Shown here in pieces: positions 3,717 to 7,524 of a stretch of 13,177 nucleotides of DNA. Position 1 is the first letter of the stretch, and each line of letters starts with the position of its first letter. Position numbers and translations under genes: made by a program. Source of the DNA: Zygophlyctis sp. KS116 (lineage: Eukaryota; Fungi; Chytridiomycota); the NCBI GenBank assembly GCA_054661495.1, contig BAAFSQ010000275.1, positions 1 to 13,177 of the forward strand, given 5' to 3'. The notes beneath the pieces are model-generated. The model was given only the letters and a program-made list of their open reading frames with translations, had not been told where the DNA came from and did no database searches.

Positions 3717-4105
3717 ATGGACAAAAATAATTCATTGTCTCCCTTTAGAGTTCCAGCCAAATCCTCCAAATTACCGACAGGCACAGGATATTCAAACTAT
3801 GACTGGCTTCAGAAATCATTTCCCCAAAAGGCCCCAATAAGAGTTTCAACGGCAGAATTGTCCAAACATAATCTAGAAGATGATGTATGGATCGCAATTC
3901 AAGGTAGAGTTTACGATATCACTCATTACATTCCATATCATCCAGGAGGCAAATATCAAATATTAAGGGGCAAAGGTATCGACGCAACAGAATTATTCTT
4001 CAAAGTTCACCCATGTAAGGATTAAGTTTTAATAAGTTAGGGGTAAATCCAGAAGCTCTTTTGGGTAAATGTTGGATTGGATTTCTTGTCCGAGATCAGT
4101 CTTAA
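3717..4105 (+). CDS. Cytochrome b5-like heme-binding protein of the Irc21 / Ncb5or-b5 / RLF type, 120 aa; join(3717..4014,4041..4105)
   Basis: Motifs GYSNYDW, ELSKHN..DDVWIAIQGRVYDITHYIPYHPGG and GIDATELF..VHPWVN..LL.KC.IG, with both heme His ligands. The conserved HPWVN is restored only by removing the 26-nt intron 4015-4040 (GTAAGG...TTAATAAGTTAG). Confidence 0.92.
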
Positions 4106-4148: not shown

Positions 4149-7000
4149 ATGTACAAAATAGACTATCCGCATATTGTTGTAACTACTGATTTGAATTCTT
4201 CGGATGGCCTGGTTATTGACAAGGAATCATCAAAGATTTTACTTTTAGGTAATTAGCATCAATTGACACGTAGAGTATCTTAGTTGGCGCGTACTAACAA
4301 TATAGGACACAGCTGGAAGTGGAGGAGATTATTCATCATGAATCAAATATATCTACAGTAATTGATAAACATAATTTGATAAATAATGTTATCAATGGTA
4401 AAAAATATTGATAATGATTAGGAAACTCAACCGCTCTTATTCAAGGGACAATCGGACATCCATTTGGACAATCCAATAAAATGTAGGTTTATGCGTGAAT
4501 AATTCTCAAAGAAATTCATTTGATTGTTGGATTGCAGAATTATTCCAAGAGCTGGAAAACGTTTCAGATCCACGAGTAACAGCTGGGTAATTCAATTTTT
4601 TGATTAATAACAGCTTATACGGGTTTACAGACAGCAAATGCATCGATATGATGAATGATCAGATTGTTCAGGGTATATGATTTAAAAATTGATTTTAAGT
4701 GGACTCTGCTATGCAGAAACTAAAAGTTGTACGGGATCCACAGCGCTTAATAAGCATAATCAAACAGGGAATAAACATTCCGTGGGCGGTCATAATACAG
4801 ATCGAAAGGCGTGAGCCAGTACGAACAGTTGGCACTCTTATTATGGTATGCACTCTATGATTTGAATTCAAAGTTGAATATCCATGATTTAGGATTTGTT
4901 AAAGATGCTCCCGAAAATTTATCTGCCGAATCTCTCAAGATGGTATTGAACCAATGTAGTCTGAAGACTAAAATGCCTCAAATTGGAGCCGGAGGGCCTA
5001 TATTACACTTATTTTCTGGTATTTTTTGGTTTTAATTTCAAGAAATAATCGGACAAAAATATTTTCTTATTTTATCTCTGGGGATTGATGTAAATTATTG
5101 TAGTTGATCTCTAGAAAACTGTCACGATTGAACAGACTTCTCTACTTTGTTTTTTGAATCAATTTTCAACTATTAAATGTTCTTTGGTATCCTGAATTTT
5201 AATCTTACACTATAGAACACCACATTCGTTGATCCGAGACTGGAATTTTTAGAAAGAAAGATTCATGCTCAGAACTTGGAGTTGGCAGAACTAAAGGTAT
5301 GCTAATAGTCCGGTTCTGATTAAATAATTAGATCATATTTGAAGCTGAAGCTAATAAATTAAAAGAAGAAATTGAAAATTTCAAGAATGAAGAATCGGAT
5401 AAAAGAGAACATCAAATAGCTATTTTACATGCTGAACAAGACGAAATGTTAGCCAAAGTTTCTTATGATTATCAAGAGGACTCCACGAGGGTATAATATT
5501 TTTTATTATTTAATTCAAGATGTTTATGAACAATCAATTGAACGTTTCAAACATAAAAATCACTCAGAATTGTATCAAACTAGAAAAATTAAATGAGCTG
5601 GAAATGCAACGACGGATCAGAGTTCAAATACGTAATTAATATGAGCTATTAATGTTTCATAGTCTCTCAATACCACTTGGCTCAAGGTTTATTAATGGCT
5701 TCTGAAAAGAAATGCATCTCAGTCGAAAAAAATAATTCAATTTTATCAGAGACTTATCAAAAAAATATCGATTCGAGTACAAAAGAATTGGGAGAAATTA
5801 GAATTAACCGTCAAGAAACCGAGGAAATGCTTAATTCGAAAATCAATATTTTAGAAGCCTTAATTTTTGAAAAAGGAGAACATATTGGCGAACTAACTAA
5901 TAAGATTGAAGAAATGAAGGCTAAAAATGATGGAAAATCTGAAAAATTGAAGAATACAGCCGATGAAATGAAATCATCTATTAAAGAGCTAAGTAAAGAA
6001 TTGGAATTGTCTAAAAGGCGTCAATCTGAAATTGAAGAGGAAAACATAAAGCTAATTCAAGAAATTGAATCTTTAAAATCAATTCATTCCATTAATTCTA
6101 ACTATTATTCATATTCTTCAGATTTGGGAGCTAAAAAAGATAATACTATAAAGCTGACCAAAAACAAATCTAGGCCACAGGTCGAACCAGTCAAGACACC
6201 GTTAGAAATTATGGAGGAGGGAGAGTCTGAAGGTCATATTGAACTGGACGCTATTAGTCAAGAATTCGAAAATACTCATGATAATTCTGTTTCAAATAAC
6301 CTAAGCAAATCAGACGAGACAGAGGAGCAAAAAAATCAAAAAGGTAATGCCACTATTTATTAAAAAATAGTCAAAGGCTCAAAAAAACAACGAAAACAAA
6401 AAAGTGAGAGTACGGCGGAACATATATATCCGTCGAAGGATCCATCGTCATCTGTAGAAGAAGTCATTGCATCAACTACAAAGACTAAGAAATCAAAAAA
6501 GAAGCAAAATCTGTTAAAAGATGACATCGAAGGAAATAACCAGCCTGCCTCCAAGTCCACTGTAGCCCCAGCAGTATCAGTGGATGGTTCAAAATCCAAA
6601 TCTTCAAAGGAAAAGCGAAAAGCCAAGGATAATAATTCAGATCCTGCACTTTCTTCCAAAGAAAATGACGATGCATCGATTAAAATTCCTCCAAAACCTG
6701 TGGAGGTAGTCAAGAAGCGTAAAATCGGCAATAAAAAACGGGAAAGAGAAGAAAAGGAGGTTTCTGATGTTGAGCTATCGCAGGTATTTTGGGTAATAGT
6801 TTCTAAAAAATTAGCAAGATGTACAGCATTCACAATCATTTCTGAGCAATTTTAGCATTTGGCCATTTACTGCTCAGGAAGACACAACACAGGAATCAGT
6901 TCCGGAAAATATAATGGCTATGCCTGAAGCAGTGATCCCAAAGCTCACTGAAGCAAAGGATAATCGTAGAACCATGCGATTATTAAGAGAATGTGTATAG
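4149..7000 (+). CDS. Kinesin-fold pseudo-motor protein with coiled coil and Lys/Ser-rich tail, about 809 aa; join(4149..4248,4274,4306..4397,4422..4482,4512..4586,4614..4672,4700..4845,4874..5018,5043..5089,5115..5186,5216..5296,5332..5490,5520..5631,5663..6343,6371..6783,6815..7000)
   Basis: Fifteen GT-AG introns of 24-35 nt join into one stop-free frame (2430 nt) that absorbs track ORFs 4811..5035, 5677..6363 and 6580..6855. The first about 275 aa follow kinesin element order: LINNVINGNSTALIQG, IAELFQEL..RVTAGLYGFTDSKCIDMM, VVRDPQRLISIIKQG..AVIIQIE..GTLIMLNI, NLSAESLKMVL, ILHLFSEIIG..LILSLGI, QTSLLCFLNQFSTIKC. E/K-rich heptads follow. The 3' end is uncertain: a possible extra intron 6995-7029 would extend it. 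Confidence 0.75.
4274..4274 (+). other. Candidate single-nucleotide exon (A) between introns 4249-4273 and 4275-4305
   Basis: Sequence reads ...TTGACACGTAG|A|GTATCTTAG...TACTAACAATATAG. The upstream exon ends in phase 1 and the downstream exon starts in phase 2, so 1 nt (or 1+3n) is required between them. Confidence 0.55.
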
Positions 7001-7107: not shown

Positions 7108-7402
7108 TTATGCAGAAACATGATCACGAGCCAAAGCAGAAATCATTCCATCAACGCCAACATCATTATTAGGTGAAAGTTTACAATTCATTGTGGGCGC
7201 TTGTCTCTCTGGTTGTGCAGCACAACTAGGTGTTGGATTACCAACTTGAGCTTAAAAAATTCTATTGGTAGATTTTAATTCACAAGACACATGATATCCA
7301 CAGTAAGATGTACAAAAGGAGCTCTTCCAAGATCAGGTCTAATAGTTTCATAAACATCTCCTGCGTCAATAAAAAGTAAACTGCGGATGTATCTTCAGGA
7401 AA
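7108..7402 (-). pseudogene. Phosphate-induced protein 1 (Phi-1/EXORDIUM-like) pseudogene fragment
   Basis: Reads FPEDTSAVYFLLT/AGDVYETIRPDLGRA/SFCTSYCGYH...RIF*AQVGNP...SPNNDVGVDGMISALA. This matches the Phi-1 motifs Y.vLTa.DV, FC..CG.H, YA.VGN and PN.DVGVDGM. It carries two frameshifts and one nonsense codon and is truncated at both ends. Confidence 0.8.
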
Positions 7403-7524
7403 TTATGGTGCTAATATCTTCAATGCTGTAGCAACATTTTTTGATTGTCTATCTACAACAATAATAAGTTTAATAGCTTCAAATATAACCGATAACTTAA
7501 TATTCTAAGATTATATAATTATAG

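Follow-up and report, generated by a model that had tools for sequence, protein, structure and literature searches.

Gene Structure and Intron Organization

The window, i.e., the whole stretch of DNA that was analyzed, is the entire contig C275 (13.2 kb) of the Zygophlyctis sp. KS116 assembly, an AT-rich assembly of 12.7 Mb in 1175 contigs, whose genes contain very short introns. Positions 4149–7000 of its forward strand, on which all features of the gene lie, are occupied by a gene of 16 exons and 15 introns [24–35 nucleotides (nt) each, all of the GTA..AG type], comprising 807 codons and a stop codon. The frame remains intact from the ATG at 4149 over the 15 introns to a single stop at 6998–7000. 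The product is a non-enzymatic protein of 807 amino acids (aa), whose known occurrence is limited to a small group of lake chytrid-like fungi. Its layout, as predicted from the spliced exons, consists of a head of ~266 aa, a heptad-rich stalk of ~250 aa, a low-complexity basic region, and a conserved C-terminal peptide of ~55 aa.

The gene model was obtained by a shortest-path search over GT..AG introns and then corrected with the help of orthologues and RNA. It is based on frame bookkeeping, on the orthologous exons of the related loci L024, L026, L027, L029, and L033, and on RNA contigs. The first automatic model, which used weak GTT/GTAC donors and placed the last intron at 6793–6826, was dropped, because the orthologues keep the QL-x-VEE frame and RNA puts the last intron at 6784–6814. 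The conserved N-terminal globular domain spans exons E1–E9 (4149–5186) and measures ~266 aa, or 293 aa when the neck-like exon E10 is counted. The head is encoded at 4149–4248, 4274, 4306–4397, 4422–4482, 4512–4586, 4614–4672, 4700–4845, 4874–5018, 5043–5089, and 5115–5186. Exon E10 (5216–5296) contains the neck-like linker and the beginning of the predicted helical stalk, and its junction with E11 is spanned by an RNA contig.

The junction between E1 and E2 (4249–4305) is unusual. It closes in frame only as G, a 25-nt intron, A, a 31-nt intron, and G, so that an exon of a single nucleotide (A, position 4274) is predicted between the introns 4249–4273 and 4275–4305. At the same site in three relatives of greater distance (L026, 806–844; L027, 4282–4315; L029, 720–753), GGT-xxx-GA precedes a single intron of 25–30 nt. 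In the window and in L024, the coding hexamer GTxxAG has given way to a 25-nt GT..AG segment that contains a stop. Judging from this comparison, the 25-nt segment looks like an insertion that has turned into an intron.

Transcript Evidence

RNA evidence was provided by contigs from lake and freshwater metatranscriptomes, which confirmed three of the introns. The 27-nt intron at 4587–4613 is supported by contig X2, which omits 27 letters after 4586, and L024 has a 1-nt insertion in the same intron. The 35-nt intron at 5297–5331 is removed in an RNA contig, and the 31-nt intron at 6784–6814 in two of them (X1 and X3). All three agree with the frames given by a sequence-only reading of the window, which had proposed a multi-exon gene with an intact frame across 15 introns. 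This proposal was upheld, as the frame closes from 4149 to 7000, with one correction, the retention of the single base 4274 between E1 and E2. In the RNA contig covering 4486–4765, the intron 4587–4613 is removed and the introns 4483–4511 and 4673–4699 are retained. Since just one of the three covered introns was removed, the contig represents a partly spliced molecule. Thus, lake RNA contains partly spliced transcripts of this gene.

The gene is flanked by a cytochrome b5 (Cyt-b5) gene (3717–4025 and one further exon) and by a gene for Fe/Mn superoxide dismutase (from ~7552). Between the gene and the superoxide dismutase gene, positions 7230–7404 were matched by RNA contigs of two runs with ~92–96% identity. 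Each of these pieces has 3–7 changed letters and 1–2 gaps, and X1 and X2 continue past 7404 into the same unlike sequence. These matches could stem from a related locus, from splicing over a long range, or from a further feature that is transcribed here.

Orthologous Loci and Selection

A HMMER search with the 226-aa stalk exon matched only open reading frame (ORF) fragments of relatives, which led to orthologous loci; no full-length or intron-free protein was among the matches. The contigs obtained in relatives were L024/L025 (96.6% nucleotide identity) and L026 (~68%). Further orthologous contigs were reached through the Cyt-b5 neighbor (L027/L028 and L029/L030) and through a word search with the E6 profile (L033). 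Two metagenome scans, one with E6 and one with the large exon as a query, returned zero matches. Every exon is present in the same order, with the same introns, in five related metagenome loci (L024, L026, L027, L029, and L033). The longest stop-free read-through in the relatives covers two exons (E4 and E5 in L027, 71 aa), and no intron-free copy was found among them. Directly upstream of the gene, the window and each related locus with upstream flanking sequence (L024, L026, L027, and L029) carry the Cyt-b5 gene, at a distance of ~25–45 nt. In L024, an ORF with a hAT transposase dimerization domain (248–640) was also observed upstream of the shared region.

A comparison of the window with L024 revealed 65 differences in 1996 bases of exons and 26 differences in 446 bases of introns and untranslated regions; insertions and deletions in the gene occur inside introns only. 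The ratio of non-synonymous to synonymous substitution rates (dN/dS) was 0.14 for the head (E1–E10; 13 synonymous and 7 non-synonymous changes) and 0.48 for the stalk, i.e., the stalk (5332–6342) evolves much faster than the head (4149–5296). Amino acid identity to L026 was ~60% in the head, 34% in the large stalk exon, and 64% in the C-terminal exon. The gene is real, expressed, and well conserved across close relatives; it is functional, and the head is its most constrained part. The dN/dS value of 0.14 indicates that the locus is not a pseudogene. The sequence-only reading had come to the same view, which is now borne out by the existence of orthologues, the constraint on the head, and the confinement of insertions and deletions to introns.

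Stalk, Basic Motif, and C-Terminal Exon

The heptad-rich stalk (5332–6100) is made up of E11, E12, and ~145 aa at the beginning of E13. It is supported by weak matches to coiled-coil families and a crude heptad scan, which marked the stretches 5332–5400 and 5851–6021 as heptad-rich, and it shows the elevated dN/dS given above. The rest of E13 and E14 (6101–6783) form a low-complexity region rich in Ser, Lys, and Glu, which is presumed to be disordered in view of its composition and low conservation. Within this region, the basic motif KKRKIGNKKR (6712–6741) resembles a nuclear localization signal (NLS), and L026 and L033 retain it in the form [KR][KR]R[KR]-I-x-x-KKRE. These observations are in line with the coiled coil and basic NLS-like tail that had been described from the window alone. 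The C-terminal exon (6815–7000, including the stop) is conserved, with 28 of 57 columns invariant in three orthologues. It carries two sharply conserved motifs, SFLS-x-FS-x-WPF and MPEAVIPK...RRT-x-RL-x-RE. Taken together, the stalk, the NLS-like motif, and the C-terminal motifs suggest dimerization, nuclear import, and docking of a partner, respectively. Whether the head is derived from kinesin or otherwise, the heptad-rich stalk is probably dimerizing.

Absence of Nucleotide-Binding Motifs in the Head

The sequence-only reading had described the head as a kinesin fold with lost catalytic motifs. The peptides quoted in support of that description and of the basic tail (GTIGHPFG, KQG-INIPW-AVIIQI, NIHDLG, and KKRKIGNKKR) were all found in the frames assigned to them. 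The head contains none of the kinesin nucleotide-binding elements: the P-loop GxxxxGK[ST], switch I (SSRSH), and switch II (DxxGxE) are all absent, and no nucleotide-binding motif is present. The proposed remnant of the P-loop, GTIGHPFG (4445–4468), is without GK[ST]. At this site the relatives have GTVGHPTF, GALGSK, and GSIGHAGN, so that the length of the loop differs among orthologues. The proposed site of the missing switch I, KQG-INIPW-AVIIQI (4762–4803), lies within E6, the most conserved exon (24 of 48 columns invariant), in which no SSRSH-like segment was detected. The proposed remnant of switch II, NIHDLG (4877–4894), corresponds to N-L-N-[DE]-[FI]-G in the relatives. The absence of the catalytic motifs was thus confirmed.

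Evaluation of a Possible Kinesin Origin of the Head

In what we take as the best single reading, the head would go back to an N-terminal kinesin motor and be a strongly degenerated, nucleotide-free form of it. A head of this kind would bind statically, probably to microtubules, and would be carried by a stalk that forms homo- or heterodimers in or at the nucleus or the spindle, and the C-terminal peptide would dock a partner. Both the kinesin ancestry and the microtubule binding are inferences, and a nucleotide-free head of kinesin descent is suggested here tentatively, as something a little short of an even chance. In favor of this origin, the head is directly followed by a short linker and the stalk, which is the layout of N-terminal kinesins. 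In addition, a collinear exon-chain alignment with permissive gap costs placed the entire head on columns 21–344 of a profile of this genome's kinesins, as in the map proposed by the sequence-only reading. In this alignment, E3 corresponded to the P-loop, E6 to alpha3/beta6/beta7, E7 to switch II/alpha4/alpha5, E8 to the LGGN strand, and E9 to alpha6. The top hhalign matches of E2, E4, and E6 fell on the columns predicted by that map, and the best local profile match was at the expected columns in five of the ten exons (E2, E4, E7, E8, and E9).

Against a kinesin origin, none of the tests reached significance. Family, PDB, and atlas searches were run exon by exon. A six-frame search of the genome with the Pfam profile PF00225 recovered ~20 true kinesin loci, none of them on C275 at E<=1. 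Comparison of the exons with Pfam by hmmscan gave no kinesin at E<=10 and no other domain in the head. The two 48-aa exons, searched against PDB by phmmer and with four-orthologue profiles, gave 0 matches at E<=10, and single exons found no usable match in the ESM Atlas. A local kinesin hidden Markov model (HMM) of 344 columns was built from the kinesins of the same genome, represented by 63 exon pieces; under hmmsearch --max with this model, every head exon scored <0. The probability assigned by hhalign to the exon alignments against the kinesin profile was <=1.5%, and the best local profile match was misplaced for E1, E3, E5, E6, and E10. In the reverse test, the exon HMMs never placed a kinesin piece in the top five of 2273 ORF pieces. 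Moreover, permissive gaps let any sequence align end to end, and motif matching by eye is prone to over-reading. A search of the genome with both 48-aa exons returned only those exons themselves.

The significance of the chain alignment was assessed with several controls. Within-exon shuffles gave z values of 0.4 to 2.6 with Viterbi scoring, Forward scoring of three orthologues gave 0.6 to 3.4 (the highest value being that of L026), and random exon orders gave 0.5 to 2.3. Profile–profile scoring gave −0.2 to 2.1, a range that speaks against kinesin ancestry. In favor of it, the shuffle and permutation z-scores were positive in all but two cases; the chain scores lay ~0–3 standard deviations over the controls. 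AlphaFold models of the two lone 48-aa exons had predicted local distance difference test (pLDDT) values of 52 and 64, with helices where alpha3 and alpha4 are expected; such low-confidence helices are compatible with the kinesin map but non-discriminating. The resemblance of these sequences to kinesin is thus consistently positive, yet statistically unestablished. The claim that the order of kinesin elements and their hydrophobic pattern are kept did not hold up as an above-chance likeness, as both exon-wise and chain scores stayed within ~0–3 standard deviations of shuffled or re-ordered controls and no profile or PDB match was obtained. None of the sequence-based tests placed the present head in the kinesin family. 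However, a genuine nucleotide-free head should fail such tests as well, because the motor homology domain of the yeast proteins Vik1 and Cik1 was recognized through a high-resolution structure (PMC4338441).

Alternatively, the conserved globular head may well be unrelated to kinesin and belong to a new or unrecognized family, an explanation we regard as about equally likely. The kinesin-like pattern would then be due to chance or to a generic alpha/beta likeness, and the protein would be a coiled-coil scaffold or adaptor restricted to this lineage, with a head that has a binding target different from microtubules. The uniformly negative exon-wise sequence, profile, PDB, and atlas searches fit this explanation, as do chain statistics within ~0–3 standard deviations of their controls and the misplacement of the best local match in half of the ten exons. 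On the other hand, the z-scores are nearly all positive, the end-to-end collinear map follows the order of kinesin secondary structure, and the arrangement of head, neck, and stalk is kinesin-like; furthermore, exon-wise searches with pieces of 15–48 aa have little power. It is improbable that the head is instead a degenerate P-loop NTPase of another class (e.g., GTPase-like), with G-x-x-G-H-P as a decayed Walker A motif behind a hydrophobic strand. The peptide STAL-IQG-T-I-G after a hydrophobic stretch does resemble a strand followed by a glycine-rich loop, but family-specific support was nil, no NTPase family was matched in Pfam or PDB, and the loop, which varies in length among orthologues, is reached after ~75 residues of the domain, as it is in kinesins. 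Finally, a decaying pseudogene or a mis-spliced model, with the domain as an artefact of forced splicing, is very unlikely and already largely refuted: the odd 1-nt exon needed at E1/E2 and the retention of two of three proposed introns in the RNA contig 4486–4765 would fit it, whereas the same exon order at five related loci, the 13 synonymous against 7 non-synonymous head changes relative to L024 (dN/dS 0.14), the restriction of insertions and deletions to introns, and the three RNA-confirmed introns contradict it.

Comparison With Known Non-catalytic Kinesin Heads

An inactive head derived from kinesin would not be unprecedented, because Vik1/Cik1 and Kinesin-11 are known. In budding yeast, Vik1 and Cik1 are partners of the kinesin-14 Kar3, and their motor homology domain binds microtubules without ATP-binding elements (PMC4338441, PMC3384419). 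Like these proteins, the predicted product of the present gene combines a globular head with a coiled coil and is devoid of elements for ATP binding and hydrolysis, and the role proposed for it is likewise non-catalytic. The difference is that the head of Vik1 and Cik1 is C-terminal and that heterodimerization with Kar3 defines them, whereas here the head is N-terminal and its fold putative. Members of Kinesin-11 (KIF26A/B and yeast Smy1p) are without the IFAYGQT and DLAGSE motifs and without ATPase activity; microtubule association persists in KIF26B, and Smy1p is considered non-motile (PMC3387196). Unlike the heads of KIF26 and Smy1, which are recognizable by sequence, the present head has no Pfam kinesin match in the exon-wise searches and is ~60 aa shorter. 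In Smy1p, an N-terminal head is followed by a coiled coil.

The N-terminal kinesins of the same genome (~20 loci) share with the present protein a head, a short neck-like linker, and a heptad-rich stalk; the head is of comparable size, and a collinear alignment is possible. The present head differs from theirs in having no P-loop, switch I, or switch II and no significant profile match.

Implications

In its full form, the kinesin reading implies that an N-terminal kinesin head without a nucleotide site arose in a chytrid lineage, independently of Vik1/Cik1 in yeast, and that it is kept under strong purifying selection and encoded by a gene read across a 1-nt exon. The protein would then supply one of the ~20 kinesins with a second, non-catalytic head or would tether microtubules statically at the nucleus or spindle. 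This complete scenario appears rather unlikely. If the head does have a kinesin fold, nucleotide-free motor-homology heads would have originated a second time, independently, now at the N-terminus and in an early-diverging fungal lineage, and the protein could help to find out how motors are tuned, or microtubules tethered, by dead heads. If it does not, the locus defines a conserved orphan family with a head, a stalk, and a sharply conserved C-terminal peptide. In either case, the locus neatly illustrates a functional gene with introns of 24–35 nt, including a junction that requires a 1-nt exon.
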